Assembly (NCBI GenBank): GCA_965112735.1
Contig: OZ218962.1
Coordinates: 992,001-1,056,000 of the forward strand
Source of the DNA: Phaeosaccion multiseriatum
Lineage: Eukaryota; Protista; Ochrophyta, other classes
DNA: 64,000 nucleotides
Direction of reading: 5' to 3'
Every line of letters begins with the position of its first letter. Position 1 is the stretch's first letter. A program made the translations under genes and the position numbers. Below, in pieces: positions 33,386-63,300 of this stretch. The notes under the pieces were generated by a model that did no database searches, was not told where the DNA came from, and saw only the letters and a program-made list of their open reading frames with translations.

Positions 33386-36300
33386 ATGCCCGGGCCCGGC
33401 AAGGATCAGCCTCAGGGTGCAGCAACAGCAGGTGTGGGGGAGGGACCGGCGGCGGAGCCACCCGCAGCAGCAGCACCAGTGCCAGGCAAAGAGGACGAGG
33501 TTCGAAAGGCGCCTCTCTCCCCCACGCACCCAAACATGGGCAGCGGACCAACGAGAAGCGAGAAAGGCGGCCATCGTCATGGCGACATTGCCATTGTTGG
33601 AATGGCCTGCCGCTTCCCTGGAGGTGCCAACTCTATTCCTGAGCTGTGGGACCTGCTCTGCAGGGAGGGCAGCGGCATCACAGACATGCCCACAGATAGG
33701 TGCGTGAGTGGGCGGTGGCTGGGTCTCGGCGACGGAACCTTGTGGAGATGATGGACAGCGTGCAGCCATCACGGCGCTTAGCAATTTCCCCCTGCCCCCT
33801 GCCACCGCAGCAGATTTTGCTGGAGTGGTTGGGCGGGAGGGAGTTCGGATGGCCGTGGACGGGATGAGGGCTGGAGAATAGAATCACTGTACACACGCTC
33901 GAGAGCTGATGGCGCTCAGCCTCACGTATCTTTCTCTCCTTCTTCACCACGCCCCCTCCCTGCTTCACTGCCCTGGCTGGCGCCTCCCAAAACACCCCTC
34001 GCGCGTTCGCGCACGTCTCTCTCACAGATGGGAGCCTGCGGCCTTGGACAAGCTCAAGCGTGGAGAAAGCGGTTACCCCACGCGGGGGGGCTTCCTCCCC
34101 GACGTAGAGCTGTTCGACAACGCCTTCTTCAACATCTCTGACCCGGAGGCATCCGCAATGGACCCTCAGCAGCGAGGTAAGCTCATCTGACTTCACCTCC
34201 TTGTGTGACGCGGACTTGTTTCGTCTTCAGTAGAACCAACAAGGTCTCACCTGCTTTGTTGTTCTCCTCAACACACGCAGTCATGTTGGAGGTGGCCTAC
34301 GAGACATTTCGCGACGCAGGGCTTGACAAGGAAGCTCTTCTTGAGAGCAAAACAGGTGCGTCGATGTATCACTATCAGAGTAGTGATGACAGAAGCAAAA
34401 AATAGACAAAGAGTACAACTGCTCTGATGCTCTGATGGTCACTGACCTCACCACTTACCTCACAACAAAGTCCTCTTCTCGAACGTCCAGGAGTGTTCAT
34501 CGGGTGCGGCAACGGAGACTGGATGTCCAAAATGCAGTCCCACGCTCCTGGACCGTACGTTGCTACGGGCGCTTCAGAGGCTCTCGTGGCCAATCGGGTC
34601 TCCTTCGTCCTCGGTCTGACTGGACCTTCGCAGACCATCAACACGGCCTCTTCCTCCTCTCTCGTGGCCGTGCACCAGGCCTGCCGAGGCCTCCAAAGCC
34701 GCGACTGTGACATGGCCCTGGCCGGAGGAGTGTCCATCATGACCAATACCGAGCCCTTCTCCGCCATGTCATCGCTGCACTTGCTGTCAGACAAGTGCAT
34801 GGTCTTTGATGCCGCTGCCAACGGCTACGTGCGGGCAGGTGAGCACGAGCGGCGCCTGCGAGACTGTAAAGAATACCAGAAGGACGAGAATGAGATTGAC
34901 ATTTGGAGGAGCTTACCGCAGCGCTGTGATTCACGGCCCTTTCCAGCTCCGCAAGGGGGGCCGTGAGAGGGAGAGGGAGAGGGAGAGGGAGACGGAAAGG
35001 CGGAGGCGGGGAGAGGGAGAGAGGGGAAGAGGGAGCAGGAGCGGGAGAGGGAGAGGGAGAGGGAATGAGAGAGGGAGGGAGAGAAGGGGAGATGGAGAGA
35101 AAGTTCGGGAGTGCGAGAGAGGTAGCGGGAGAGAGAGAGGGAGAAGGCGAGACAGGGAGAGATGGAGAGGAGCAGGGGCAGAGACAGGGAGAAAGGGAAA
35201 GGGAGAGGAAGGGGGGGAGATAAGGGAGATAAGTGCAGGATGAGCAGGGAGTGTTTCTTTGGGTCTGAGATTGTCCTTGTTTTATGAGCCTGATGAGCGC
35301 GGCTCGACCATCCCCTAGCTCACCCTCCAGTCACCTCCATTTGCTGCGTGTGCCCTGTGGCTGCGAGCAGAGGGCTGTGGCGCCGTCGTGCTAAAGCGCC
35401 TCGAAGACGCCATAGAGGCCCAAGACAACATATTGGCGGTGATTCGAGGCTCCTGCATCAATCACACGGGCCTCGGCACGACCCTCACTGCCCCCAACGA
35501 AGCGGCACAGAAGGCCGCGGTCTTGGACTCCGTAGCAGAGGCGGGCATCGCTCTGTCCGACGTGAGCTTCATCGAGGCACACGGCACGGGCACACCCCTC
35601 GGGGACCGCACGGAGTGGGCTTCCATCGCCGGCACCTACGGAGACCACGACCTGGCAACAGCCCGCCGTCTCGTCGTTGGAGCGATCAAGACCAACCTTG
35701 GTCACGCGGAGGCTGCGGCAGGCATTGCGGGGCTCATCAAGACGGTGCTGGTGCTCAGGCATGTCCAAGCGCCTCCCAACCTCAACCTGTCCACGCTGAA
35801 CCCGGCACTGAAGACGGAGGGCAACAGCGCTCTGCTGCCCATCCCCGGAGGCATGACCCCCATCTCCACCCGAATCGGAGGTGCGTTGGGGCCCTTATTC
35901 AAAAACGTTTCCTGTGATCACTCACTCACTCACTCACTCAACTCACTCACTCACTCACTCACTCACTCACTCACTCACTCAACTCACTCACTCGCTCACC
36001 CACTCTCACTCACTCACTCGCTTGTTCTTGAGACAAGTTAAAGAGGACTTTAGATGGGGATGAGCTATCGTATGATGGTAAATGGCTGAACCCGTTCTCA
36101 CCTTGCCCTTCTGCTGGCGGTGATTGCTTCTGCTTCTTTCACAGCTGTCAACTCCTTTGGGTTTGGCGGTGTCAACGCCCACGTCATCCTGGAGGGGACG
36201 GCCATCTCACACGCAGAGAAGACCAACGTCAGAGCCTCCCCGTTCACGAGCAGAAAGGCCTTCAAGCTGCTGCCCGCCCCACCGATATCGGCGGCCGGAA

Positions 36301-39300
36301 AAAACTCCTTGGCAGCAGAGCTCCGCGGTGTCAGTCCAGCTGAACGCCAAGAGAGGCTTCGATCCGTCATCTCCGACATCGCCCTCTCCAGCACGGCAGG
36401 CTCTGTCGGCATCGACATGGACAAGCCTCTCATGGAGGCTGGCATGGATTCGTTGGCGCTCATGGAGCTAAGGCAGCGTCTGCACCTGCTCACGGACATT
36501 CCCGTTAGCAGTGCCGCCCTCTTCGCCCACCCCACCGTGGCGGCCTTGGCGGAGTGGTTGGGCTCAGCGCTCATGGAGGGAAGTGCGAGCAGCCTGCGCC
36601 TGCCCAGGATGATGCCATCGTCCCAAGGGGGGGGCAACGCTTCTGCCCCGCTTGCAATAGTGAGCATGGCGTGCCGCTTCCCTGGAGGCACAGACAGTCT
36701 CGACGCCTTCTGGTCCATGCTGCTGGAGGGAAGGGACTGCATCACCGCCATGCCCCCGGGAAGACTCACTGGTGCGGCGAAGGAGTGGCACGGAGGCTTC
36801 ATCGACGGCGTGGAGATGTTTGACAACGCCACGTTTGGCATCTCCGTAGCCGAGGCCGAGGCGATGGACCCCACTCAGCGCATCATGCTCGAGGTCGGCT
36901 ACGAGGCGCTGCACGAGGCAGGCTTCTCTGTGGCCACGCTGCGCAACAGCAACACCGGAGTGTTCGTGGGCTCCATGCAGCACGGCGACTGGGCCGCGCT
37001 GAACAAGAATGGTGACACCAAAGCTCACTCCATGATGGGCGAATCAGCGGGCTGCCCTGCCAATCGCCTGTCCTACGCACTGGGCTTGCGAGGGCCAAGC
37101 ATATCGGTTGACACGCTTTGCTCTTCCTCGCTCGTTGCCTTGGACACGGCTTGTCGCTACCTTCGCTTCGGCATGTGCGAAGCTGCGGTTGTGGGAGGAG
37201 TGAACCTGCTACTCGGCTCCCGTTCCTTCGAGCAGCTCGACAAGGGAGGTTTCTTGTCCAAGGACTGGTACGTACGGGAGAATGGGGGGGGCTGGCCTTG
37301 GGTAACATCGAGCTCCTGTAATGCGAGTAGAGTTATAAAGGGCTTGCTGACAGGTAGACACAGGAGTCATCCCTCTCATCGGCTTGTCCTTCCTTCTCTG
37401 CCCCCATCTGCCTCGTGCTGTTCCCGAAGGCGCTGCAAGACGTTCGACGCAACGGCGGACGGCTACGTCCGAGGAGAGGGCTGCGGCGCCTTGGTGGTGA
37501 AGCGGCTTGACGACGCGGAGCGCAACGGAGACAGCATCCTGGCCGTCGTGCGGGGAAGCTCCGTGAACCACAATGGGCGCTCTATGCGGCTCACAGCACC
37601 CAGTCCATACGCACAGCAGACGCTGATTGAGGCAGCCTTGGAGGAGGCGGGTGTAGCGGGCAGGGAGGTTCACTTCGTGGAGGCGCACGGCACCGGCACG
37701 GCTCTTGGCGATCCGATTGAGATGAGTGCTCTCAAAGCCGCCTACGGAGAAGGGCGGGAGAACTCTTTCCCACTCATGGTGGGAGCGGTCAAGACTAACA
37801 TTGGTCACTTGGAGGGCGCCGCAGGCATCGCGGGAATCATCAAGACCGTCATGGCTCTTCAGCACAGAGCTGTTCCAGGCAATCTGCACCTCGGTACGCT
37901 CAATCCTCAGCTGGGCATTGATGGATTTCCGGTGGTCTTCCCGTCGTCCAGACTAACCCCCTTGAGTGGCGAGGGACACCCCAATGGCAGCAGCGAGCTC
38001 TTGTACGCAGGAGTAAGCTCGTTCGGAGCAGGAGGCACCAACGCCCACGTGGTGCTGAGCAGCGCTGCGCCGAAAGTGGAGGGGGAGGGTTCGGAGACAC
38101 CGACGAGGAGGAAGACGGAGGTCGCCACATCTCTGGTCGCCTTCCTCTTCACGGGGCAAGGCTCCCAGTACCCCGGCATGGGCAAGGAGCTCTACGATGA
38201 GGTGAGTTCGCTTGCTCGTTTTAACCTCAGTATCTGTCAGCGCTCCTCTTGTCATCTGCGTCGCTTCGCATCACCTCGGCCAACTACCTTCGTTCTCATA
38301 TGCTTTTCTCTCTTGTCTCTGCTTTGCGTGTCTCTCGTTCGCTGCCTCAACAGCGCGAGGTCTTTCGTGAAGCTGTTCGGCGGTGTGATGGCCTCCTGCA
38401 GGACCAGGCCTGGCTGGACAAGTCTGTGGTGGAGCTCCTATATCCTGCTGCCGAGGAAGAGGAGAGTGCACAAGCGCTGCTGAAGGAGACACGCTACTGC
38501 CAGCCGTGTCTGTTTGTGCTGGAGTACGCCCTGTGTGAGCTGTGGAAGTCGGAGGGCGTGGAGCCGTCCATGGTGATGGGCCACAGTCTGGGCGAGGTAG
38601 TGGCGGCGTGCGTGGCCGGCGTCATGTCGCTGGAGGACGGGCTGATGCTGTCCGCCAAGAGAGGAGCCGCCATGCAGGCCTGCCCCGAGGGGGATGGAGT
38701 GATGTTCGCAGTGAGGGCGAGCAGGTGGACAACCTTGGCGAGCATCGCCGCTGTGGGGGTGGCAGGCGAAGTGGTGCTGGCGTCGTCGAATGGACCGAGG
38801 GCGAGCGTGATCTCTGGAGCGCGCAGTGCTGTGGGCAAGGTGGTAGAGATGCTCACGGCGGATGGGGTGGGCTGCAAGGCCCTGGAGGTGTCGCACGCCT
38901 TCCACTCTCCTCTGATGGAGCCCGCTGTACGTGCGCTGGAGGAGGTTCTGAGGCAGGTGTCATTCAGCACCCCACGCATTCCCCTGGTGTCCAACGTGAC
39001 GGGTGAGGTGGTGAGAGGGGAGGAGGTGACGCAGGCGACGTATTGGGTGCAACACATGCTATCGCCGGTGCTGTTCGCGGAGAGTATCACCACGCTTCTC
39101 CGGGAGAGGCCTGAAGGTGTACGAGTGGTAGAGATTGGGCCCAGCTCTGTGCTGATCAACATGGCACGGCAATGCGAGGGAGAGAGGTCGGACGTGATGT
39201 GGCAGCCGTCCATGCGGTGGGAGGGGAGCGACACCGCCTCGTTCGACAGAGCAGTGGCGGCAGTGCTGGGCAAGCCCACACCTCTGTTCCCCACCCGTCG

Positions 39301-42300
39301 TGCGCTCCCTTGGTTCGAGCAGCAGGCGCATGCGATGGTTCCAAGCGGCGGCGTCGTCGAGAAGAAGGGAGGAACACTCCTCTCATGCCGCTTCACCCCT
39401 CAGCTCAAGGGCTTGCTGCAAGATCACGCGGTGGGAGGAGTGGTGCTCATGCCGGGCATGGGGTACATCGAGATTGGCCTTGCCGCCTTGCTGAAGGGCA
39501 AGCCTTTCCCTGGTGAGAGGCAAGTGGTCCTGAAGGGCCTGGTCTTCATGGCTCCACTGGAAATTGCAGGCGCTCGTGCCCCCTATGTGGACCGTACGGT
39601 GGAGGGCTCCACTACTGTGGTCGCTTCTGAAGTCAGTGCCTTCATCACTGCCCGCGGCAGCGTGCAGTTTAACGGAGGTCCCCACGGCAAGGCTGGAGAG
39701 ACGGTGGCGAAGGCGACTTCCCTTCAATTGCGCACAAGGACGGAGGCAGAGACATTGGACGTGGCGCGGGTGAGAGCCGCGGTGGGGGACGAAGACATCG
39801 CCGAGGGGCTGTACCTCAAGCTTGCCAGTGCTGGGTATGACTACGGTGCCAGCTTTGTCCGAACGCAGCATCTGTTCGCCGCCAGTGGACAGGCCTTGTC
39901 GGTTGCGGCGGCAATGGATGGCAGCCTATCGGCGGAGTGGGAGATCAACGGCTTCTACCTCCACCCTGCAGTGCTGGATAATGCCGCGCACACCATGCTG
40001 GCGCTCTTGCCGGAGGAGCTGACGAGCAAGGCCTTTGCCGCCGTCTTCTTGCCCACCGGCTGCGAAGAGGTGCTTGTGCGAGGGGCCATCACGAGCGAGA
40101 AGGTGTGGGTGCATGCGGTGGTGAAGAAGGTGGACTCTCAAGCTCGTGCGATCGAGTGCAACGTCGTGATAGCACACTTCGAGACGAAGCAAGTGCTCGT
40201 GCAGCTCAACCACTTCCGGATGCAGCTGGCCCGAGGCTTCTCCCGCACCAACCCCGTCACCCGAGCGCTGTATTCTCTACAGTGGCTGCCCAACGATTCC
40301 ATCTCCCGCAGCAGAGGTGACGTGGAAGAGCGAGAGGAAGCTTGGCTGCTCCTCACCAGCGGCGCTCGTGGCAGCTTGGACAAGGCAGCGAAAGAGAGCT
40401 TGCCCATCTCTGTGACACTGACGGAGAGGGAGGTCAGGAGCATCGACGACTCCACCCTCGCTTCAGAAGCGCCCGCAGGATGGGGCCGTGTGGTGTGCAC
40501 ATTGTTCGGCGGCAAGCAGCAGAGCCCCAGCCAAGAGGCACAGACACTCCTCCTGTTGCTACAGCAGCTTTTACGAAGGCCAGCTCCCTTGATGGTGCTG
40601 GTGCAGGACACACTAAGCGGCGGCGAGGGGTGGAGGCATCACTGGGTGTACGGCATGATTCGAACCGCTCGTATCGAGCACCCTTCACTAGCCATCACGG
40701 TGGTGGACGTGGGCAGCGAGTACCTGCCCAAGTGCTGGACCATTGCGTCACTGGGGCAGGACGTGTGGGTGCGAGACGGACGATACCTCACGCCTCACCT
40801 GGCGCCCTCAGCAGATGCGCACCTCCCATTCTCCTTCGATCTCATAGCGAGGGGAAGCATCGAGGGAGGCTTGAAGCGCAGGGACGTACTCCCTTCCGAG
40901 AGAGACGCTGCCTTGCAGGACGGGGAGATTGAAATTTGTGTCAAGGCGGTGGGGCTCAACTTCAGAGACGTGCTGAATGTGCTCGACCTGTACCCTGGCG
41001 ACCCTGGACAGCCTGGCATCGAGCTATCGGGAGTGGTCACTCGAGCATCGCGAAAGTCGCGCTTTCAAGTGGGAGACAAGGTCTACGGGTTTCCGGACAA
41101 GGGCTGCTTCCGCTCCCACGTAACGACAAGTGACGTGTGTCTGGCCAACATGCCTTCCAGCAGGACCTTTGAGGACATGGCAGCGCTGCCTACCGCGTGG
41201 CTCACAGTGGTGCACGCATTCGAGCAACTCGCTGGCTTGAAGCGTGGTGAGAAGGTGCTCATCCATGCCGCGTCAGGTGGAGTGGGTCTGGTGGCCGTGC
41301 AGATTGCTCAGCGCATCGGAGCGGAGATCTACGCCACTGCTGGATCCGAGGAGAAGCACGCCTACTTGCGAGGCCTGGGCGTGAAGCACATTGCGTCGTC
41401 GCGAGATGCGGAGGCCTTCAAGGCTTCCATTGGAGCTGCGAAGGTGGATGTGGTGCTCAATTGCCTGTCGGACAACTTCATCCCTTACTCTCTGGGGCTG
41501 CTGACGAAGAACGGGCGCTTCATGGAGATCGGCAAGCGAGGCGTGTGGACCAGGGAGGCGATGAAGGCTGCCAGGCCCGACGTGCTGTACGAGCTGATTG
41601 CGCTGGACTCCATGATAGCAGACGACTTCAAGGCCGAGAAGCAGGGCTGGGCGTTCGCTGGGCTGGAGCAGCTGACAGCGGACAGTGAGGCGGGCAGGGC
41701 CGAGGCGCTACCAGTGAAGACATTCGACTTGAGGGATGAGCTTGTGGAGGCAATGAACTTCCTCAGAACTGCGAAGCACATTGGGAAGGTTGTGCTCAGT
41801 AGCCCTGAGTGTGGCATTCCCGTCGTGCGAGACGGGACTTACGTTATCAGCGGTGGGCTGGGGGCGCTTGGGCTGGCGACTGCGAAGCATTTGGCTGATA
41901 AAGGAGCTCGTCATCTTGTACTGCTCTCGCGAGGGGGAAAGGTCAAGGCGGACTCCAAGGCGCTGTGGGAGGAGCTTCTCAACGTGCCCGGCGGAGTGAG
42001 CACCAGGGCTGTATCGTGCGACGTGTCTAGCGCGCAGTCGCTTGGGAAGGCCCTAGACACGGCGCTCAGCAGCATGCCGCCCGTGCGAGGTGTCATCCAC
42101 GCTGCCGGCGTGCTCGACGATCGCTTGCTGGTGGACCAGACGCCCGAAAGTATCGAAGAGGTCTTCAAGCCGAAGGTGGAGGGCGCTTGGAATCTGCACG
42201 AGCTGTCGCTGCAGATGGCCTGGCCCTTGGACTTCTTTGTGTCCTACACATCCATGGCAGGTGTGTTAGGCAATGCAGGCCAGGCCAACTATGCTGCAGC

Positions 42301-45300
42301 CAACGCTGCTGTGGACGGGTTGATGCAGCATCGTCGGCGCCTCGGTTACTCCAGCTCTGTGGCCCTCCAGTGGGGGCCGTGGGGCGAAGCTGGCATGGCC
42401 GCTCGGTCCGAAGTTGCCATGGCCAGTCTGGAGATGGCCGGCGTTGGGCTCATCAGTAAGGCATTGGGTATGGCGGCGCTTGATGCCGGCGTGTCAGCCC
42501 CATCTGCGGCATCACGCGAGCTCTTGGTTCTGCCTGGCATGGACTGGCCCGCCTTCTCTGAGACGGCTAGCAACCCGGGGATGCTCGATGCTCTCGTTAG
42601 AGAGGCTTCGATGGTGGGACCGCAGAACAAGACTAGCAACAGTGTGACTAACGAGGTTAAGCGCGACCTACTGGAGCTGTCGGAGGGTGAGCGAAAGCCC
42701 ATGCTGCAGGCTTTAATCATGGAGATGGCAAAAGCATGCATTGGGGAAGCAGGCATCGAGCTCGACGCTTTGAGGCCTTTGATGGAGGCTGGGCTGGACT
42801 CCATGTCTACGGTGGAGCTTCGGAGTCGACTTCAAGCTCGTTTCGGCGTGCCGGTCCCCAACGACGTGCTCTTCAGTTACCCCTCAGTGGCAGCGCTGAC
42901 AGAGTGGCTCGAGGGCTTGGTCTTGGGGGCTGAGGAGGGTGAAGATGAGGACAGGAATGCTGAACCCTCTGGAGGTGGCATGACTGCCCCCCTGGCTGTT
43001 GTGGGCATGGCGTGCCGCTTTCCGGGGGGCTCGAACAGTCCAGAGGCCTTCTGGTCAATGCTGCGAGCAGGTACTGACTGCATTCAGACTGCCCCTCTGA
43101 ACCGGTGGGCGGGAAAAGAGGGGAGCGAGGATTGGCAAGGCAGCTTCATTGCTGAGGTGGAAATGTTTGACCCCGCCGTATTCGGCATCTCGTTTGCCGA
43201 AGCGGCTGCGATGGATCCGCACCAGCGAGTGATGCTGGAGGTTGGATACGAGGCATTGGTCAACGCGGGGTGCGACAAAGCAAGCTTGGCGGGCAGTCGG
43301 GCAGGCGTCTTCATCGGCATGATGAGCCTCGGCGACTGGGGCTACCAGGGCAAGCATGTAGGGGCTGGAGTATACCGCACTATGGGTCGCGTCCAATGTG
43401 GCGTTGCCAATCGGCTCTCGTACGTGCTGGGGCTGCAGGGGCCGTCCATGACCACTGACACGGCGTGCTCGTCATCGCTGGTGGCCTTGGACAACGCCTG
43501 CAGCAGCTTACGCATGGGCAAGTGCGATTCCGCTGTCGTCGGGGGCGTCAATTGCTTGCTCGGGCCAGTGGCCTTTGAGGACATTCAGGGCAGCGGCTTC
43601 CTGTCGCCGGACTGGTAAGTTCTTCCTTTTCGTTCCTCCGCACTTATGGTTCTGCTCCTCCGTCTCGTCCTACTTGCGCCGCCGACTACAACTCCCCTCA
43701 CGCTACCCATGCCCTTCTCAGGCGCTGCAAGACGTTCGACGCGTCGGCAAACGGATACGTGCGGGGTGAAGGGTGCGGTGCCGTTGTGCTGAAACGTCTA
43801 GATGACGCCCTCGCTGCCGGAGACACGATCCTCGCCGTGATTGAGGGCTGTGCCGTGAACCACAACGGAGCCAGTGCCCGCCTCACAGCCCCGAGCCCCG
43901 CCGCTCAGCAGAGACTCATCGAGGCGACGCTGCGTGAGGCCGGTCGAGAGGGCTCCGAGGTACGCATCGTGGAGGCGCACGGCACGGGAACCTCCCTCGG
44001 TGACCCCATCGAGATCAGTGCTCTCAGGGCCACGTACGGGAAGAACCGTGACGACTCTTTCCCGCTGGTGGTCGGTGCGGTCAAGACCAACATTGGCCAT
44101 CTGGAGGGTGCGGCGGGAATTGCCGGGGTCATCAAGGCCGTCTTGATGCTGCAGCACCGCGCTGTGCCGGCCAACCTCCACCTCGAGAGTATCAACCCGG
44201 AGCTGGACATGGACGGCTTCCCCGTGCAGCTCCCGTCGGCGATGGTGGAGCTGGAGGACGAGGGAGATATGTTGGTGGGGGTGAGCTCGTTCGGGGCGGG
44301 AGGAACGAACGCTCACGTGCTGCTGAGGAGCTACGGGAACAAGCCTGACTCCGTATTGACGGCTGGCATGAATCGCGATGGGGGGCCCTTCGTCAAGGAG
44401 GAGGCGCTGTTCCCGAATCGTGTGGCCTTCCCGTGGTACAAGAGCGATAATCACGCTTTTTGTCCGAGTGGAGGGGTGCGAGATGAGAAGGGCGGGGTGC
44501 TGCTGTCCTGCCCATTCTCTCCAAGGCTCAAGGGCCTGTTGCAGGAGCACGCAGTGGGGGGGGTGGTGCTCATGCCGGGCATGGGCTACATTGAACTGGC
44601 CCTGGCCACGCTGCTGAGGGGCGAGGCCTTCCCCGCCGATGGCCAGGCGCGCATGAAGGGCCTCGTCTTCACGGCCCCGCTGGAGGTGGCAGGTGCCCGT
44701 GTGCCTGGGGTGGAGCGGATGGTGGATGGGTCCACGACGGTGGCATGCTCGGAGGTGAACGTGTTCCTCTCTGCCCACGGCAAGACGCGGATCACGGGCG
44801 GCCCCCGCGGCAAGGCAGGTGAGGCTGTGGCCAGGGCGGCGTCAGTGGTGCTGGAGGCAAGAGAGGCTACTGCAATGATGGACGTGAGGAGCATCCAGGA
44901 GGCAGTGGGGCAGCGCGACATTTCGGGTGAGCTGTACGCCACGTTCGCCAAGGCCGGCTTCAACTACGGCCCCCGCTTCAGGCGGACAGAGCGCTTGTAC
45001 GCTGCCGAGGGACAGGCTCTGTCCGTGGCGACAGCGCAGGACCCCAGCCTGTGCTCTGAGTGGGAGGTGCGTGGATTCTACCTCCACCCCGCCGTGCTGG
45101 ACAGTGCCGCACACACCATGCTTGCCCTTCTGCCTTCTGAGCTGACCAAGGGTGCTACATTCTTGCCAGCTGGATGCAATGACGTGGTTGCGAAGGGCGC
45201 CATCAGAGCGAACAAGGTGTGGGTGCATACCGTGCTCACCGAGATCAGCGACAAGCGCGACAGCATCAACTTTGACATTGTCATTGCCGACTTTGACAGC

Positions 45301-51300: not shown

Positions 51301-54300
51301 TTCGAGGGTGTGAGATCCTCGCTCCGAGGCTGGTGCCCAGCACACTCCATCTGACATCGGCAAGAGTCGATCGCTTCACGTACAGGGAGGATGGGACCTA
51401 CCTGATCAGCGGTGGCCTGGGGGGGCTGGGTCTGACGACGGCGAATCACTTGGTCTCCCAGGGTGCTCGGCACCTGCTCCTCCTATCTCGAAGCGGCCGG
51501 GCGGCAGAGGAAGTTTCAGAGCTGTGGCAGGCCCTGCACAGCATGGAGAGTGTCACCGCTGTGGCCGTGGCCTGTGATGTGTCCGACATGGGCCAGCTTC
51601 GAGATGCTGTAGCAACGGCCTTGGTGGGGCTGCCTCATGTTCGGGGTGTGATTCACGCAGCGGGTGTGACTGGCGCAAAGGGAATGTTGTCGGGCGAGAC
51701 GGAAGAGAACATGCGAAATGTCTTTGCCGCCAAGATCCAGGGAGGTTGGAATCTCCACGCGCTGTGCCTTGAGTGGATGGCGAGCGGCAGGGAGGAGATC
51801 GACTTCTTCGCCTCGTACTCATCGACCTCGGCTTTGCTTGGCTTGTCCAATCAGAGCGCCTATGCCGGGGCCAATGCTGCTTTGGACGGGCTGATGCGGT
51901 ACCGCCGACGCCAGCTTGGCCTTCCTGCTTCCAACATTCAGTGGGGCCCATGGGGCGACGTGGGTATGGCGGTGCGGCTGGAAATGGTGTCCAAAGCTGC
52001 GGAGATGACCGGAGTGGGCGTGATCTCATCGGCGCTGGGTATGAAGGCACTGGATGCCGTCCTTGTAAGTCACGCGCAAGCCAACGTACAGGAGGTGGCC
52101 GTCATGCCGGCCATGAGGTGGGGCAGATTTCGAGCGAGCTTGGACCCGGTGCACAACGATTTCCTCGGGCAATTGACCGACCGCGGAGAAAGTGGTGAGG
52201 CGTCAAAGGGCTGCAGCGTCAACGCCGAGGTGCGGGAGGAGCTTCTGCACTTGCCGGAATCGGCACGGCGGGAGAGGATCGAGCAAGGCCTGACGGACAT
52301 GGTGGTCGAGTGCGTTGGCGAGGACTTCACCTTGGCAGCAACGGTGCCCTTGATGGAAGCCGGACTCGATTCGATGGCGTCCGTGGAGTTTCGCAAGCGA
52401 ATCGAGGCCTGGTGTGGTGTCACCGTTTCGAACGGAGCCTTCTTCTCGTATCCATCAGTGTCTACAATGGCCGCGTGGCTCGAGGCCCAGATTCTCGAGG
52501 TGCTGAATGATGTAGAGAGGGGTAAAGAGGTGCTGACAGGACAGCACTTGTCCTCGGACTCTCGAGCCCCCATCGCTGTGGTGAGTATGGCGTGTCGCCT
52601 CCCCGGCGGAGCCAATAGCCCGGAGCAGTTCTGGTCGATTATGTGCGAGGGTAGAGACTGCATTACGGCAGCGCCACACGACAGGTGGGAGAGTAAGACG
52701 GGCGAGCTGCAGCTACAGGGCGGGTTCATCGAGGGCGTTGAGATGTTCGATAATGCCTTCTTTGGCATCAGTGCTGCCGAGGCAGAGGCAATGGACCCCA
52801 ATCAGCGCCTCATGCTGGAGGTGGCCTTCGAGGCCCTCCATCGCGCGGGCCACAGCAAGAGCAGCCTGCGGGGCAGCAACACCGGCGTGTTCGTGGGCTT
52901 GTCGGACACGGACTGGGGCTTCGTGGCAGGAGATGCCGCTGCTCAGAGCGCCTACGGCGGAATGGGCCTGACGGCTTCGAACATTGCTAATCGCGTATCC
53001 TACACTCTGGGTCTCTGCGGCCCCAGTGCGTTGCTGCAGACAGCATGCTCGTCGTCTCTGGTGGCTCTGGATGCTGCTTGCAGCAACCTCCGCCTGGGCA
53101 AGTGCGACTCGGCGGTGGTCGGTGGCGTGAACCTGCTGCTCGGGAAAGGCACCTTTCAGTCCTTGATTGCGGGGACCTTCCTCTCCCCCGACTGGTACGT
53201 GGCACTGGCCGCTCTGGTCTGAGTGCTCTGTTTCATTTATCCCTTTTCTGCTTTGTGCAGCTCATTCTTGGGCGTCCTCTACAGTCAAACAAGACCTTCC
53301 GTTGCACCCCACTCACACCCCACCAACCTTTCTCTGCCTCGTGACAGGCGCTGCAAGACGTTTGACGCATCGGCCAATGGTTATGTCAGAGGCGAAGGAT
53401 GTGGTGCCATTGTGCTGAAGCGTTTTGATGATGCTGTGGCCAGCGGGGACACTGTGCTAGCGGTGATCGAGGGATGTGCTGTCAACCACAATGGGGCCAG
53501 CGCTCGTCTGACGGCACCCAGTCCTCTTGCTCAGCAGCAGCTCCTGTCGGCTACTCTGGCAGAGGCGGGAAGGGACCCCGTAGAGGTGAGCTTCGTGGAG
53601 GCGCACGGCACGGGAACGGCGCTGGGAGACCCCATCGAGATGAGCGCTCTCAAGGCCGTGTACTGCGGACCGGACCGCAGCGAGGCAAATTCCTTGGTGG
53701 TAGGTGCGCTGAAGGCCAACATCGGCCATCTGGAGGGTGCCGCAGGTATTGCAGGCCTCATCAAGACCGTACTGGTGCTGCAGCACCGCGCCGCCCCCCC
53801 GAACCTGCATTTGAAGGACATCAACCCCGAGCTGGAGCTCGCCGGCGTCCCTGTGACGTTACCTGTGACCATGGAGCCCGTGGGTCAAGGCGGGCAGACA
53901 GGAGCGCTCGTTGCTGCCGTGAGCTCTTTCGGTGCCGGCGGAACCAATGCTCACGCCGTGCTATCCGGTCCCAGAGCTGGGAGTACGGCCACGCATGCCG
54001 ACGGAGAGGGCGTCGGCTTCAACGATGCTCTTCAGAAGGACGGCGAATCAGAGCGTGGCGCATTGTATTCCACACGCCAAGCATTTCGTTGGTTCAGGCC
54101 TCCAATGGCATTCCTGCCGAGTGGCGAGGTGGTCCAAGAGGGAGACGGAATGCGGCTCTCTTGCCCCTTCTCGCCTCACTTCAAGGACCTTCTCAAGGAC
54201 CACGCAGTCAATAATGTGGTGATCATTCCGGGGGTGACGTACATTGAAGTGGGTGTTGTCACTGCCCAAGGAGGAAGACAGCTCGGGGTGGAGCAGCAAG

Positions 54301-57300
54301 TCGTCCTGCAAGGAGCCAACTTTGTGGCTCCGTTGGAGATTGAGGGTTTCCGGTACACGGGCACGGACCAAGCGCAGAGCCGCAATACTATTGTCTGTGA
54401 CGGCTTGAGTGCTCTATACGCGAGCGATGGAAGCATGCAGTTTTTCGGAGGCGTTGAGGGTGACAAGGGAGCGACCGCGAGGATGGACCACGTGTCTGTC
54501 ATGGAGCGAACCGACCCGCGTGACATGCTCGATATAGAGGGAATCAAGGGGCGGGTAGGGACTGTGGACTCGGCCCATGGCCTGTACAAGGCAATGGCGG
54601 ATGCCAACTTCAACTATGGCCCTCGCTTTGAGCGGAATTTACAGATGTTCGCCAATGACGGAGAGGTGCTATCGGTCGTGCGTGCTCTGGACTCGGACCT
54701 GTGTGAGCCTTGGGAGGTAACGGGCTTTGCTCTGCACCCTGCGGTGCTCGACAATGCGACTCACTCACTTTTGCACGCAATCCCACGCCAGTTGCTGAGA
54801 GCGAGGGATGGAGCTCCATTCCTGCCTGTTGGCTTCGACGAGGTGGTCGTTTCTGCACCCATAACGGGAGAGACAGTTTGGGTGCACACAAGGCTCGTCG
54901 AAGTGGAGCCCGGGGGCAACAGCATCAAGTTTGATATCAAGATTGCCGACTTTGATAGCAAGCAGATTCTCGTGGAGATGCGTGGGTTCCGCACTCAGCG
55001 GGCGAGAGGCTTTGCGCGCCCCAATCCGCTTCGTCGGGCGATGTACACGCTGGAATGGCAGACCACTGAGCCGTCTACACAGGAGGAGGCCCCTGGTAGT
55101 GATACTGACCCTGCTGAGGCGGCGGCGCGACCGAAGTGGCTGGTGGTTATTCCGCAGGACGAGGGGGAGCGGGAGACTTCAATCATTGCTGCAGTGCGGC
55201 TCTGTGTTCCGGAGAACGTGCACGTACACGCCCGATATGGGGGGATGGACGGCTCCTGCGATGATGGTGCTTTTCTTCTCGGAGAGGACGAGTGGGCTCG
55301 CGTCTTGTACGTGCTAATTCCCGGAGCTGGCGAAGAAGACGCAGACGGAAACCTGCAAGCACGAGCGGCCTACGCCCTGATGGCTCTACTCAGGAGCCTG
55401 TGTACTGCATCAAGGGTGCCGCTGACGGTTTTGACGAGAGGCGTCCAAAGCGGCGAGGACTGGCGTCACAGCTGGGTGACTGGGCTGGTGCGGACTGCGA
55501 GGGTGGAGCACCCTTCCATGCAGATTGGCGTGGTGGACCTCAGCGGCAAGAAGGCCCAAGACAGCGAACTTGCCTTGGGATTGACCGTCTCTACTGCCAC
55601 AGAAGATGTTTGGGTACGCGACGGACAGTGCTGGGCTCCTCAGCTTGTACGTCAGCCCCTGCAGCTTCCCTTCTCACTGGATTTGAAGGCAAGAGGCAGC
55701 ATTGCAAACGCGTTCGCCCTTCGTGATGATGTGAACCATGGCAAACACCAGCGCCTTGACCCAGTTGGCAGCCATGTGGAGGTGGCAGTGAGGGCTGTTG
55801 GGCTGAACTTCTGGGACGTGCTGAATGTGCTGGACATGTACCCTGGCGATCCTGGAGATCCCTGCTCCGAGTTTGCCGGGGAGGTGATCAGTGTGGGAGC
55901 AAGCTCGCGCTTCCGTGTCGGCGATGCAGTGTTTGGCTTTGCAGACGGAGGATGTTTGCGCAGTCATATGACGACGAGTGATGTGTGTCTGGCCGTGATG
56001 CCGGCCGTACTGAGCTTCGAGCAGGCCGCTGCACTTCCCACCGTGTTCCTCACCGTGAGGAAGGCCCTTGAGGGCCTCAAGGCTGGAGAGAAGGTTTTGA
56101 TTCATGCCGCATCGGGCGGTGTGGGCCTTGCCGCGGTGCAGTATGCTCAGCGGGTGGGCGCAGAGGTGTACGCTACTGCCGGTGCTGCTGCGAAGAATGA
56201 CTTCCTCCGGAGCTTGGGAGTTGAGCACATTGCGTCATCGATAGACGCAGAGGCATTCAAGCAGTCCATGGGTGAGATGAAGGTGGATGTGGTGCTCAAC
56301 TCTCTGAGTGAAGACTACATTCCCTTCTCGTTGGACATGCTACGCGAGGGTGGTACATTCGTCGACATTGGCAGGCGAGGCGTGTGGAGTCACGAACAGA
56401 TGCGCACCGCCCGGCCCGGTATAAGGTACGAGCTGCTGGCATTGGATACTATGATTGAGTCTGACTTCGTAGCTCGTGAGCCAGGCTGGATCAGTGGCGG
56501 GCTGCAGCGTCTTGCTGAAGACTGCATGTCTGGCAATGTGAAGCTCTTACCAACCATACCCTTTGACATGAGGGAGGATACTCAGAAGGCCATGGCATTC
56601 ATGAGCCAAGCGAAGCACATCGGCAAGGTGGTGCTGACCAACCCCTCGTACGGTGTGCCAGTTGTGTCTGATGGCACGTACGTCATCAGCGGCGGTCTGG
56701 GGGCTCTCGGCCTCGTGACTGCTCAGCACCTCACGTCGAGGGGCGCTCGTCACTTGGTGCTGTTGTCGAGGAGTGGAAAGGTCGCCGAGAGCATGACGGA
56801 ACAGTGGCAGCAGCTTCGAAACATTGTGGAGCTGACTATCCATACTCCTACTTGCGATGTTGCTGACGCTGAGGCACTTCGGACTTGTCTGGGGGGTGTA
56901 CTGCCTCTGCTGCCCCCTGTGCGCGGTGTGGTGCATGCTGCCGGGGTGCTGGATGATAAGCTGCTGGGAGAGCAAACGGTGGAGAGCGTGACGAACGTCT
57001 TCCGACCGAAGGTGCAGGGAGCGGTCAACTTGCACGAGCTTTCGTTGGCTTGGGCGAACGAGGAGGGGCGCGCTCCTGGCCTTGACTTCTTCTTTTGCTT
57101 CACATCCATGGCCGGAGTACTCGGCAACGCTGGACAGGCCAACTACGCTGCGGCGAACGCGGCGGTGGATGGGCTGATGCGGCACAGGCGACACCTCGGG
57201 CTCGCAGGGACGTCATTGCAGTGCGGGCCGTGGGCTGACGTTGGTATGGCCGCCCAGCTCGATATCGTTCAAAAGCAGTTGGAGTTGGCGGGTGTGGGCA

Positions 57301-60300
57301 CGGTGTCAGCTGAGCTGGGCATGGCTGCCTTAGATGCCGCTGCGATGCCGTCAGCGTATTTGGGCAATGTGGCCGTTCTGCCGGGGATGGACTGGGCCAA
57401 GTTTGCAGACAGCATGGGTGCGTCCCGCGGCTCGTTCCTGCTGTCAGGGCTTGTCTCAACAGCAGCAGGCGCATCAAGCAACACCAAAATCAACAATGAA
57501 GTGCGCGAGGCGCTCTTGAGACTGCCCCCTGGCGAGCGACAGCAATCAGTGCGACTGGCGGTGCTTGATATGGCCAAGGACCTACTTGGAGAGGGTGCCG
57601 AAGAGCTGGATGCGAACACGCCTTTGATGGAAGCTGGTCTTGACTCTTTGTCAACAGTGGAGCTGCGCGGCCGGCTACAGGCTCGCTTTGGGGCTGTAGT
57701 GACCACTGACGTGCTCTTCGCGTATCCCACGGTAGCGGCGCTGGCAGTGTGGATCGAAGCGGAGGTGCTTGGCGAAGTAGAGGAACCCTCTAGCAGTCGC
57801 TCTGCGGCGATCGCTGCTGAAGCGCACCGCACTGACTCAAGGGCGCCGCTGGCCGTCGTCGGGATCGCCTGTCGCTTCCCTGGAGGGGTTAAGAACCCCG
57901 AGGACTTCTGGGCTATGCTCTGTGCAGGGACAGACTGTATTGGAGCCAGCCCTGTTGGTCGCTGGGCCGATGATGGTCAGAAGCAGTGGCAAGGGGGCTT
58001 CATTGATGGAGTGGAGGCTTTTGATAACACCTTCTTCGGCATCTCTGCGGCCGAGGCGGGTGCCATGGACCCGCATCAGCGCGTCATGCTGGAGGTGGGG
58101 TACGAGGCTCTGTACAGGGCGGGATACCGCAAGGACACACTACATGGCAGCAACACAGGTGTGTTCGTGGGTGCGTCCGGCAGCGACTGGAGCTCAATGG
58201 TAGACGATTCGAACAAGGGTGCGTACTCCGGCCTGGGCATGTCCAATGCGAGTCTGGCAAATCGGATGTCTTACGTGCTGGGCCTTGGAGGGCCGAGCAT
58301 GAGTGTAGACACGATGTGCTCGTCGTCTTTGGTGGCACTGGAGGGGGCCTGCAGTAGCTTGCGACTGGGGAAGTGTGACATCGCCTTGGTGGGAGGCGTC
58401 AACTTACTGCTGGGTACACAGACGTTCGAGACCGTCGCCGCAGGAGGTTTCCTGAGTCCTGACTGGTAAGTCCGTGTCTCTTCTGTGTCGATGGGAGCTT
58501 GTTCTTGGGGCCGGTATGAGAGCCAGATCACAAGGCCGAAGCTGTTTGAAAGGCCCCTGTTGCTGATGGATTACCTCTTCTCTATTCTTCACTTTTGCGA
58601 ACCCACAATTCCTCATGGTCAGGCGCTGCAAGACGTTCGACGCTGCGGCCAACGGTTATGTTCGAGGTGAGGGCTGCGGCGCCGTGGTGCTGAAGCGACT
58701 CGACGATGCACAGACCAATGGCGACCACATCCTCGCTGTCGTCAATGGCTGCGCTGCAAACCACAACGGGAGAAGTTTGCGCTACACTGCCCCGAGCCCT
58801 TCTGCTCAGCAGCGTCTGATGGAGCAGGCACTGGCGGAGGCCGGCTTGAACGGTCATGAGGTTGATTACGTGGAGGCACACGGCACCGGGACTTCTCTCG
58901 GCGACCCCATCGAGATGAGTGCTTTGAGGGCCGTGTATGGCCATGGCCGCGAGGAAGCTCGGCCCCTGGTGGTTGGGGCGGTGAAGACCAATATCGGGCA
59001 TCTAGAGGCTGCGTCCGGAATCGCTGGCTTCATCAAAGCTCTGCTGGTCCTTCAGCATGGATCTGCTCCCCCAAATCTCCATATGAGGAAGCTCAATCCG
59101 GAGCTTCGTTTGGATGGCTTTCCGGTGACTTTGCCGTCTACCATGGTGCCACTAAGTGCCAGGGACGGGGAGAGGCGCACTGCTGCTGTCAGCTCCTTCG
59201 GCGCGGGAGGAGCCAACGTCCATGCGGTGCTTAGCAGCTTCGGGCCGACGATGGTAGAGGAGAGCGAGAGCGAAGCCTTGCTGCAGCTTGATGGGCAGCA
59301 AAGCAAGGAGAGTTCGCCGGTGACATTCTTGTTCACAGGACAGGGTTCGCAGTACGTGGGCATGGGCAGGGAGCTGTACGAGAAGGAGGGCGTATTCCGC
59401 GAGTGCGTGCAGCAGTGCAGCACGCTGCTCATGGAGCGGGCCTGGCTGGACAAGTCTGTGGTGGAGCTCATGTACCCTGCCGCCGCTGAGGATGGGAAGG
59501 AGGAGGAGGAGGAGGAGGAGGAGGAGGAGGAGGAGGAGGAGGAGACTGCACAAGCGCTGCTGAAGGAGGCACGCTACTGTCAGCCGTGCCTGTTTGTGCT
59601 GGAGTACGCCCTGTGTGAGCTGTGGAAGTCGGAGGGCGTGGAGCCGTCCATGGTGATGGGCCACAGTCTGGGCGAGGTAGTGGCGGCGTGCGTGGCCGGT
59701 GTCATGTCGCTGGAGGACGGGCTGATGCTGTCCGCCAAGAGAGGAGCCGCCATGCAGGCCTGCCCCGAGGGGGATGGCGTGATGTTCGCAGTGAGGGCAG
59801 GCAAGGAGGCTACTTTGGCAAACATCGACGCTGCGGGGGGGGCAGGCGAGGTGGTGCTGGCGTCGTCGAATGGACCGAGCGCGAGCGTGATCTCTGGAGC
59901 GCGCAGTGCTGTGGGCAAGGTGGTAGAGATGCTCACGGCGGATGGGGTGGGCTGCAAGGCCCTGGAGGTGTCGCACGCTTTCCACTCTCCTCTGATGGAG
60001 CCCGCTGTACATGCGCTGGAGGAGGTTCTGAGGCAGGTGTCATTCAGCACCCCACGCATTCCCCTGGTGTCCAACGTGACGGGTGAGGTGGTGAGAGGGG
60101 AGGAGGTGACGCAGGCGACGTATTGGGTGCAACACATGCTGTCGCCAGTGCTGTTCGCAGAAGGCATCCACACGCTGGTGGAGCACTGGATGGGAGACGG
60201 GAGGGGGGCTGACCTGAGCATTGTTGAGGTGGGCCCCAGCCCTGTGCTGAGCAGCATGGGAGCCAAGTGCGAACGTCGCGAGGGGCTGGTCTGGATCTCC

Positions 60301-63300
60301 TCCCTCACGCGCGGGAAGAGCTCCGAGGATTCGTTTGGAGCAGCTCTGGGCAGTGTAACGGGGCCGGAGCATCTTGAGCTTTATCCGACTCGCCGATCAT
60401 TTCCTTGGTACAAGCCTCCGTTGGCGCTTATGCCAAGTGGTGAGGTGGTCCAAGAGGGAGACGGAATGCGGCTCGCCAGCCCCTTCTCCCCTCACCTCAA
60501 GGACCTTCTCAAGGACCATGCCGTCAACAATATGGTGATCGTTCCGGGGGTGACGTACATTGAAGTGGGTGTCGTCGCTGCTCTAGGAGGAAGACAGCTC
60601 GGGGTGGAGCAGCAGGTAGTCCTGCAAGAAGCCAGCTTTGTTGTTCCACTGGAGATTGAGGGTTTCCAACAGGCCGGCACGGACCAGGCCCAGAGCCGCC
60701 ATACAATGGTCTGTGCCGGGATGAGTGCCCTTCTCGCGGCAGATGGAAGCATGCAGTTCTTCGGAGGTGCCACGGGCGACAAGGGCACCACGGCAAGAAT
60801 GAAGCACGCGTCTGTCATAGAGCGAAGCTCGGTGCGTGTTTCGCTGCACGTGGAATCCATTCGAGCTAGAGTTGGCGAGCATGACGTATCGAGTGGGCTC
60901 TACAAGTCTTTCGCAGACGCCGGCTTCCAGTACGGCCCCCGCTTTCAGCGGACCCGCCACATGTACGGAGGGGACGGAGAGGTTCTGTCGGTCGTGTGTG
61001 CCATGGATGAGGAGCTGTGCGAGCCGTGGGAGATGAAGGGCTTTGTTCTGCACCCCGCGGTGCTGGACAATGCTACCCATACCATCATGCAAGCGCTGCC
61101 AAGGAAGCTGCTCAAGGAGGGGGGGGACTCTCCATTCCTACCTGCAGGCTTTGACGAGGTGGTCGTTTCCGCCTCCATGACGGGAAAGAACGTGTGGGTG
61201 CACACGAAGCTGAGTGAGGTCCAGTCAGTGGCGGACAGCGTCAAGTTTGACATCCGCATTGCAGACTTTGACAGCAAAGAGGTGCTTGTGGAGATGCGGG
61301 GCTTCCGCGTGCAGCGAGCGAGGGGCTTTGTGCGTGTCAGTCCCGTTCGTCGTGCAATGTACGCATTGGAGTGGCAGGCCGCTAAACCGTCTACACAGGA
61401 GGAGGCCCCTGGTAGTGATAATGACCCTGCTGAGGCGGCCGTGCCACAGAGGTGGCTGGTGGTTATTCCACAGGACGAGAGGGAGGAAGAGATTTCAATC
61501 GTTGCTGCAGTGCGGCGCTGTGTTCCGGAGAACGTGCACGTACACACTCGATATGGGGGGATGGACGCCTCCGGGGATGATGGTGCTCTTCTTCTTGGAC
61601 AGGACGATTGGACACGAGTCTTGTACGTGCCGATCTCTGGGGATGGCGAAGAAAACGTAGACGGGGGTCAGCAAGCACGAGCGGCCTACGCTCTGTTATC
61701 GCTACTCAGGACCATGTCCACTGCGTCGAATGTGCCGCTGACGGTCTTGACGAGGGGCGTCCAAAGCGGCGAGGACTGGCGTGACAGCTGGGTGACAGGT
61801 CTGGTGCGGACCGCGAAGATGGAGCACCCCTCCATGCAGATTGGTGTGGTGGACCTGAGCGACAAGAAGGTCCAAGACAGCGAGCTTGCCTTAGGCTTGG
61901 CCTTCCCTACTGCCACAGAAGATGTTTGGGTACGAGATAGGCAGTGCTGGACGCCTCAGCTTGTACATCAGCCCCTGCAGCTTCCTTTCGTGCTTGACTT
62001 GAAGGCAAGAGGCAGCATTGTGAACGCTTTCGCCCTTCGTGACGATACGAGCGTTGGTAAGCATCAGTCCCTCGACCCAGCAGCTGGCAGCTCCGTAGAG
62101 GTGGCAGTGAGGGCCGTTGGGCTGAACTTCCGGGACGTGCTGAATGTGCTGGATATGTACCCTGGAGATCCTGGAGATCCTTGCTCCGAGTTTGCCGGGG
62201 AGGTGGTCAGTGTGGGAGCAAGCTCGCGCTTCCGTGTCGGTGATGCAGTGTTTGGCTTTGCGGACGGAGGATGCTTGCGCAGTCATATGACGACGAGTGA
62301 TGTGTGTCTGGCCGTGATGCCGGCTGTGCTGAGCTTCGAGCAGGCCGCTGCACTTCCCACCGTGTTCCTCACCGTGAGGAAGGCCCTTGAGGGCCTCAAG
62401 GCTGGAGAGAAGGTACTGATTCACGCCGCGTCTGACGGTGTGGGCCTTGCCGCCGTCCAGTATGCTCAGCGGATCGGCGCAGAGGTGTACGCCACTGCTG
62501 GTGCTGCTGTGAAGCATGACTTCCTCCGGAGCTTGGGAGTTGAGCACATTGCGTCTTCAAGAGACGCAGAGGCGTTCAAGCAGTCCATGGGGGAGATGAA
62601 GGTGGATGTGGTGCTCAACTCTCTGAGTGAAGACTACATTCCCTTCTCGCTGGCCATGCTAAGCCAGGGTGGTACATTCGTCGAGATTGGCAAGCGAGGC
62701 GTGTGGAATCACGACGAGATGCGCACCGCCCGGCCCGATGTGAGGTACGAGCTGCTGGCACTGGACAGCATGATTGAGTCTGACTTGTCGGCGGGTGAGC
62801 CGGGCTGGATAAGCGACGAGCTGCAGCATCTGGCTGAGGACTGCATGTCTGGCAATGTGAAGCCCTTACCAACCATACCCTTTGACATGAGGGAGGATAC
62901 TCAGAAGGCCATGGTACTCATGCACCAAGCGAAGCACATCGGCAAGGTGGTGCTGACCAACCCCTTGTATGGTGTACCAGTGGTGTCCGATGGCACGTAC
63001 GTCATCAGCGGCGGTCTGGGGGCTCTCGGCCTCGTGACTGCTCAGCACCTCGCGTCGAGGGGCGCTCGTCACCTTGTGCTGCTGTCGAGGAGTGGGAAGG
63101 TCGCCGAGAGCATGACAGAACAGTGGCAGCAGCTTCAGAACAAGGTGGAGCTGATCCATACTCCTACTTGTGATGTTGCTGATGCTGAGGCACTTCGGAC
63201 TTGCCTGGGGGGCGTGCTGCCCCTGCTGCCCCCTGTGCGCGGCGTGGTGCATGCTGCCGGGGTGTTGGATGATAAGCTGATGGGAGAGCAGACGGCGGAG

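Follow-up and report, generated by a model that had tools for sequence, protein, structure and literature searches.

Modular polyketide synthases (PKSs) that combine modules with an embedded acyltransferase (AT) and modules without one are already known, in bacteria and in one fungal line. A bacterial catalogue lists 122 PKS and 351 PKS-NRPS (nonribosomal peptide synthetase) lines, 473 of 8,799 assembly lines, in which cis-AT and AT-less modules are mixed (PMC10394414). The fungal LasC/LasD synthase of strasseriolide C, from Lasiodiplodia theobromae and described in 2026, has an AT in modules 2, 4 and 7 only; a heterologous host made the product with no dedicated trans-AT present, with malonyl transfer from acyl carrier protein (ACP) to ACP, and the loading ACP gets its malonyl from module 2 (PMC13749307). 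Algal multimodular PKSs have been described as lacking embedded ATs and heterokont PKSs as single-module enzymes with AT, the order of duplication and AT loss being left open (Shelest et al. 2015; PMC4661987), and the pelagophyte Chrysophaeum shows the same split between multimodular AT-less and single-module AT-bearing enzymes (PMC10366177). Here we describe a multimodular PKS gene on the + strand of a window of 64,000 nucleotides (C13:992001-1056000) from the stramenopile alga Phaeosaccion multiseriatum, in which AT-less and AT-bearing modules alternate.

The gene runs from about position 33386 to past the end of the window and is an assembly-line type I PKS, one copy of a large family. Its architecture by itself we regard as well established. 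The whole is best explained, tentatively and with close to an even chance of being right, as a PKS of cis-AT ancestry whose embedded ATs would load the ACPs of the AT-less modules in trans; the identity of this loader is the part that we infer. The initial annotation of the window had started from the view that modular PKSs are normally all cis-AT or all trans-AT, which the bacterial catalogue and LasC/LasD have made outdated. As far as found in the literature searched, such an architecture on this scale in an alga, with the AT state differing between near-identical ketosynthases (KSs), is new.

Gene and domain organization

Domain positions are given in window coordinates and paralogs by numbered contig (C1, C2, C5 and so on) of the genome scanned, which comprises 67 Mb in 22 contigs. 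From about 33.4 kb onward, the + strand of the window consists of long stop-free stretches, with the frame changing between them, which are joined via short pyrimidine-rich GT-AG introns. Five introns, one in each of KS2 to KS6, share a single site between SPD(W/G) and RCKTFD, and the spliced frame from 36090 to 63364 comprises 8,793 codons with zero stops. The gene is thus eukaryotic and intron-split: the "one polypeptide" of the initial annotation holds once the GT-AG introns are removed, not as a contiguous frame, and all motifs named there were found at their coordinates in the spliced translation.

Pfam matches and motifs give the order KS1-ACP1; KS2-AT2-DH-ER-KR-ACP2; KS3-DH-ER-KR-ACP3; KS4-AT4-KR-ACP4; KS5-DH-ER-KR-ACP5; KS6-AT6-DH-ER-KR6. 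Six KSs thus stand in series in one gene, with the Cys-His-His residues in KS2 to KS6, the AT-less KS3 and KS5 included, and Ser in KS1. The window ends within module 6, and the sequence beyond it was also examined: it holds ACP6, a membrane-like region of about 900 residues and a terminal NAD-binding thioester reductase. As there are six KSs in total and the gene stops after module 6, the pattern -A-A-A (A, AT-bearing; -, AT-less) is that of the whole gene. Provided that each module is used a single time, the domain set predicts a C12 chain made of acetate plus five malonates, carrying one hydroxyl in mid-chain and released by reduction. The features are as follows.

33386-36140, + strand: probable start Met and KS1 (tblastn against KS3; Pfam KS N and C domains; translations)
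33566-33700, 34083-34179, 34280-34352, 34482-34834, 35330-35900 and 36138 onward, + strand: about six KS1 exons, roughly placed
36237-36263, + strand: post-AT-type motif SPFTSRKAF, 24 residues past the KS1 end
36411-36560, + strand: ACP1 of the loading module, Ser in GMDSL (Pfam PP-binding; motif)
36648-37892, + strand: KS2, Cys codon 37119-37121
37268-37429, 43615-43721, 48771-48934, 53195-53347 and 58466-58622, + strand: introns in KS2, KS3, KS4, KS5 and KS6, respectively
38142-39181, + strand: AT2, with GQGSQ 38154, GHSLG 38579, HAFH 38894; post-AT motif LFPTRRALPW 39284
38202-38353, + strand: GT-AG intron in AT2
39365-42910, + strand: DH2-ER2-KR2-ACP2 (Pfam)
42989-44187, + strand: KS3 of AT-less module 3, Cys codon 43466-43468, both His
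44299-44436, + strand: KS3-DH3 junction, a 36-residue spacer, then LFPNRVAFPW (44407-44436); open frame, no AT remnant
44488-48069, + strand: DH3-ER3-KR3-ACP3 (Pfam)
48142-49400, + strand: KS4, Cys codon 48622-48624
49608-50669, + strand: AT4, with GQGSQ 49620, GHSLG 49908, HAFH 50223; post-AT motif LFPTRKAFPW 50640
51393-52481, + strand: KR4-ACP4, without DH and ER (Pfam)
52569-53813, + strand: KS5 of AT-less module 5, Cys codon 53046-53048
53937-54092, + strand: KS5-DH5 junction, a 42-residue spacer, then LYSTRQAFRW (54063-54092); no AT remnant
54141-57746, + strand: DH5-ER5-KR5-ACP5 (Pfam)
57846-59085, + strand: KS6, Cys codon 58317-58319
59323-60408, + strand: AT6, with GQGSQ 59338, GHSLG 59659, HAFH 59974; post-AT motif LYPTRRSFPW 60379
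60457-64000, + strand: DH6-ER6-KR6 (Pfam); the gene runs on past the window

KS1 begins about 66 residues after the plausible start Met at 33386. Its catalytic Cys is replaced by Ser (INTASSSS, codon 34649-34651), both His are kept, and the ACP is fused to it directly, without an AT. Judged from its sequence, module 1 is a KS(Cys-to-Ser)-ACP loading didomain and not an extension module; five extension modules follow it. It is not a loader of the KSQ type, as the residue is Ser rather than Gln and the loader has no AT. Eleven paralogous genes begin with a KS of the KS1 clade (L039, L043, L044, L054, L057, L059, L063, L065, L073, L074 and L079); the Ser itself was seen in the window copy alone. 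In many paralogs (L039, L043, L044, L059, L065, L073) the intron after the loading KS contains long microsatellites reading (SLTH)n.

At the other end of the gene, the region between ACP6 and the reductase (C13:1056280-1058100; L034, about 916-2740) shows about eight hydrophobic segments and weak hexapeptide-repeat (LbH) matches.

Absence of the AT from modules 1, 3 and 5

Matches to PF00698 were obtained in modules 2, 4 and 6 only, and the GQGSQ, GHSLG and HAFH motifs are confined to AT2, AT4 and AT6. An AT in every extension module, as in a cis-AT synthase, is therefore not what is seen; AT-bearing and AT-less modules of the elongating type occur in one synthase, and the alternation first noticed in the initial annotation was confirmed. 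Given an AT-less module 1 and an AT-bearing module 2, which every paralog shows, -A-A is one of six ways to fill the other modules, and the alternation taken alone is statistically unremarkable.

Single stop-free stretches (43579-49002 and 53223-58466) span the KS-to-DH junctions of modules 3 and 5, so that a hidden AT exon is impossible there. In the isolated KS linkers of modules 1, 3 and 5 nothing resembling an AT was detected, with the cut-off relaxed to E <= 10. The distance between GGTNAH, where the KS ends, and the post-AT motif is 24, 36 and 42 residues in these three modules, close to the 15-35 estimated at first. In alignments of module 2 with module 3 and of module 6 with module 5 the similarity restarts exactly at the post-AT motif and continues into the DH. 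In the loader as in modules 3 and 5, the AT is missing precisely, with the end of the KS on one side and the post-AT motif on the other. The proposal that a KS-AT adaptor had been excised along with the AT stood for the AT only: there is hardly any adaptor to excise, the linker being merely about 20-45 residues in the AT-bearing modules of the gene family. Short KS-AT linkers have likewise been noted in the apicomplexan TgPKS2 (PMC9301873).

The flanking subdomain of about 100 residues that typically follows trans-AT KSs has no counterpart in the 24-42 residues of modules 1, 3 and 5. The Pfam family of KS C-terminal extensions matches with its first half alone, under its cut-off.

Ancestry and constraint of the AT-less modules

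When 46 AT-less KS-junction loci and 30 AT loci were compared, the AT-less junctions fell into a few near-invariant types, with 11 copies of the KS3 type and 12 of the KS5 type, in addition to Cys-to-Ser loading, terminal and His-to-Asn types. In the KS tree, from which the row 'W_KS1' was disregarded because it is the KS2 sequence, the KS5 type forms an entirely AT-less clade (12 rows, support 100) and the KS6 type an entirely AT-bearing one (16 rows, support 99), while the KS3 and KS4 types are intermingled (10 AT-less and 6 AT rows). The strongly supported branches require the AT state to have changed at least four times.

KS3 and KS4 are about 97-98 % identical in DNA and protein (43831-44330 compared with 49044-49540), and their DNA diverges abruptly and completely 8 codons past NAHV. 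This pattern suggests gene conversion between neighbouring modules, confined to the KS. In a paralog on C8 the C-terminal halves of two adjacent KSs are identical. The best single-stretch PDB match of the C-terminal half of KS3 is the cis-AT CurL KS-AT, with 229 bits, compared to 160-178 bits for trans-AT KSs. Both the CurL match and the near-identity of KS3 to the AT-bearing KS4 place the AT-less modules as descendants of cis-AT-type modules.

Between paralogs, the ratio of nonsynonymous to synonymous substitution rates (dN/dS) of the AT-less modules was 0.13-0.35 in KS and DH and 0.5-0.8 in the spacer, values from pairs that are not independent and blurred by gene conversion. The AT-less types form conserved clades of 10-12 copies each. 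The AT-less modules are, by these measures, constrained and not decaying, and they look functional and elongating. With Cys-His-His intact, KS3 and KS5 should elongate and would need malonyl supplied in trans.

It could instead be argued that the AT-less modules are skipped or do not elongate, or that this copy is a decaying pseudogene, in which case the pattern would have no mechanistic meaning. Several observations point that way. At about 63406, a gap makes KR6 two bases shorter than each of the 35 paralogous copies (181 compared to 183 bases), and as assembled its frame breaks before the segment with the catalytic Ser and ends at 63549, ahead of ACP6 and the reductase. The nucleotide-binding glycine motif of ER6 is AASDGVG (62434-62436), whereas ER2, ER3 and ER5 have AASGGVG, and in one paralog (L041) the AT-less junction does not keep the frame. 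Five sequencing runs with this DNA, from two studies and four of them of one sample, look like DNA: their contigs cross an intron unspliced and are shredded by paralogous repeats, and they contain no spliced reads. However, the catalytic residues of KS3 and KS5, the uninterrupted spliced frame, and the copy numbers and low dN/dS of the AT-less types all speak against decay, and the closest KR6 copy (C15:237884-238066), 99 % identical, is a single open frame. The gap may stem from misassembly or be a disabling mutation of very recent date. Only a slight chance is left to this explanation. A 67-base KR6 'intron' (63365-63431) was considered and rejected, as splicing it out would take the segment with the catalytic Ser along, and against the paralogs the difference is simply one of 2 bases.

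The gene family in the genome

The whole-genome scan gave 64 PKS-type AT domains and at least 113 full KS C-domains, a lower bound as scoring covered part of the candidates. In about 20 clusters, 64 KSs are followed by an AT and 49 are not. The pattern -A-A-A-A occurs at C2:495875, which resembles the window gene with one additional pair of an AT-less and an AT-bearing module, and -A-A- occurs at C15:259687 and C1:1326584; other patterns are -A-AA-A-, -A--AA-AA, -AAAAA- and AAA. A stretch of 17 KSs on C1 contains two genes, one of which has three consecutive AT-less modules (2403820, 2398596, 2393387). From module spacing, the AT-less extension modules are of the 5.2-kb fully reducing kind, and the AT is carried by KR-only modules (4.4 kb) and by 6.3-kb modules.

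The initial annotation had proposed that each embedded AT loads two neighbouring ACPs, as a bimodule sharing one AT. In its strict form, with the AT serving exactly its own ACP and that of the adjacent AT-less module in an obligatory architecture, this idea draws on the alternation in the window gene and in the C2, C15 and C1 genes, on the extra pair at C2:495875, which hints that the pair duplicates as a unit, and on the expectation that ACP(n) must dock at KS(n+1), beside AT(n+1). In the window gene an AT-bearing module directly follows every AT-less one. Across the family, the next module has an AT for 15 of the approximately 20 AT-less fully reducing modules with a known successor and none for the other 5; as about 63 % of non-loading modules are AT-bearing in any case, no clear enrichment results. 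The last module of the C15 sister gene is AT-less, and the family includes -AAAAA-, AAA, -A--AA-AA and a run of three AT-less modules, with which a fixed rule of one AT per bimodule fails. We consider the strict form quite improbable. What survives of the proposal is that trans loading would be needed and that embedded ATs are plausible donors.

A looser version is that the pair of an AT-less fully reducing module and the next AT-bearing module is both a duplication unit and a working unit, in which the downstream AT would pass malonyl to two ACPs, that of its own module and the one docked at the KS of that module. This we think unlikely, though not to the same degree. If it were true, the genes would be living intermediates on the way from cis-AT to trans-AT, and module duplication would have preceded AT loss, an order that Shelest et al. 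(2015) did not settle.

Some further observations were made on the paralogs. The closest, from C15:259687 to about 236000 (L077-L079, L090), is apparently the window gene minus one module, and the KR of its fifth, AT-less module is 99 % identical to KR6 of the window, which suggests recombination between modules 5 and 6. At L053 (C1:2405706), L066 (C3:382592) and L076 (C8:1934103) a divergent KS, which may not elongate, has its second catalytic His changed to Asn (NMGNLEG), with an ACP directly after it, about 1.9 kb ahead of the next KS. A word-index protein search with the module-3 exon as query returned bacterial PKSs alone, matching in the KS part, and no close relative, a result uninformative for other algae.

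Possible supply of malonyl units to the AT-less modules

All embedded ATs are of the HAFH (malonyl) type and are 74-96 % identical to each other genome-wide (median 91 %), and none of them stands apart as a specialised class. In the mechanism that we propose, the AT would have been lost in modules 3 and 5 and in the loader and kept, with HAFH, in modules 2, 4 and 6; the AT-less modules would elongate with their ACPs malonylated in trans. The suppliers would be the nearly interchangeable ATs embedded in the megasynthase itself, such as that of the following module, which adjoins the KS that the ACP would have to visit anyway, and malonyl could be transferred directly or from ACP to ACP. The alternation would be a by-product of module duplication and recombination, with the pair of an AT-less fully reducing and an AT-bearing module acting as the duplication unit, rather than a fixed structural rule. 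Loading by embedded ATs is favoured because many ATs have been retained, because ACP(n) is expected to dock at KS(n+1) beside AT(n+1), and because LasC/LasD provides a precedent.

A search of the genome for a stand-alone transacylase had a mixed outcome. One stand-alone AT gene was found, of the FabD type, at C5:58.1-60.9 kb (L086, C5:57401-61600), so that a trans loader could be available; on C13 the AT matches are the three embedded ATs only, and there is thus no dedicated AT near the PKS as would be expected of a trans-AT system. The FabD-type gene is complete, with at least nine introns, and has GQGAQ, GLSLGE in place of GHSLGE, and GAFHT. Its apparent first exon (MAADGDAVSDDDF...) has no obvious signal peptide in what is a provisional gene model. 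A weak match on C11 (C11:2364.5-2366.3 kb), the other AT outside the family, was rejected as a stand-alone AT, as KS-like exons lie upstream and a DH motif downstream; it lies inside an intron-rich KS-AT-DH gene (L087+L035+L088, C11:2358501-2372500), which is unlike the main PKS family and could encode a PKS of the iterative kind or a protein similar to fatty-acid synthase.

It is possible that the synthase is a true trans-AT system, in which a free-standing transacylase, either this FabD-type malonyl-CoA:ACP transacylase (MCAT) or another AT protein, loads ACP1, ACP3 and ACP5 and the embedded ATs serve their own modules. The complete, intron-rich FabD gene with its motifs would suit this role, the runs of AT-less modules in the paralogs would suit a diffusible loader, and multimodular algal PKSs are usually read as trans-AT (PMC4661987, PMC10366177). 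On the other side stand the 64 embedded ATs that have been kept, the cis-AT type of the KSs with no flanking subdomain, and the C13 matches described above. In addition, FabD typically serves organellar type II fatty-acid synthesis, where it is expected here as well. On balance a free-standing loader appears rather unlikely.

The ACPs of the AT-less modules might also take malonyl straight from malonyl-CoA, as reported for the ACPs of apicomplexan TgPKS2. The ACPs of a eukaryotic modular PKS reportedly self-acylate, according to the title of a paper by Keeler et al. from 2023. The short KS-AT linkers are a further likeness to TgPKS2. However, ACP3 is 73 % identical to ACP2, whose module has its own AT, and no sequence feature distinguishing the ACPs of AT-less modules was seen; self-acylation is very unlikely in our estimation.

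Loading by embedded ATs thus has to be weighed against four points. The genome does contain a FabD-type gene. In 5 of the approximately 20 cases among the paralogs an AT-less fully reducing module is not followed by an AT module, one of them sitting between two AT-less modules, so simple neighbour loading is not general. With the KR6 frame break and the altered ER6 glycine motif, the window copy may be recently disabled or misassembled. Finally, only runs that look like DNA hold this sequence, and no spliced joints occur among them.

AT presence in this recently expanding family varies from module to module between almost identical KSs, and the loss of ATs can therefore be studied here, as it were in the act. 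The family offers many natural cases for testing whether embedded ATs serve foreign ACPs, which bears on PKS engineering and was first raised experimentally in 2026, in a fungal system (PMC13749307). Its practical value lies in a collection of AT-deletion junctions that arose naturally and have been tolerated in evolution.

Comparison with described systems

The window gene shares with canonical cis-AT PKSs (DEBS, CurL) the KS type, the order KS-AT-DH-ER-KR-ACP, the HAFH malonyl-type AT and the post-AT motif before the DH or KR, but its modules 3 and 5 and its loader have no AT. The KS-AT linker also differs, as it is about 100 residues in DEBS and about 20-45 in this gene family.

The algal PKSs described as trans-AT, from chlorophytes, haptophytes and Chrysophaeum, are similar in being giant intron-containing genes with module duplication and common AT-less modules (PMC4661987, PMC10366177). 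Their multimodular members are reported to be almost entirely AT-less and the AT-bearing ones to have a single module, whereas of the KSs in multimodular genes of this genome, at least 113 in number, 64 have retained the AT.

Like the window gene, the mixed bacterial lines have AT-bearing and AT-less modules in one assembly line (PMC10394414). They are bacterial, and a stand-alone AT supplies them according to that review's definition of trans-AT modules, which leaves the gene location unstated. The window gene, in contrast, has no AT gene nearby, and its AT-less KSs are near-identical to the neighbouring cis-AT KSs.

LasC/LasD, likened by its PKS domains, is also a eukaryotic line with an embedded AT in some modules and a loader without AT. 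The fungal system has two polypeptides, methyltransferase (MT) domains, four tandem ACPs and thioesterase (TE) release, while the window gene is a single gene without MT domains that has a KS(Ser)-ACP loader, reductive release and a regular alternation of AT-less and AT-bearing modules.

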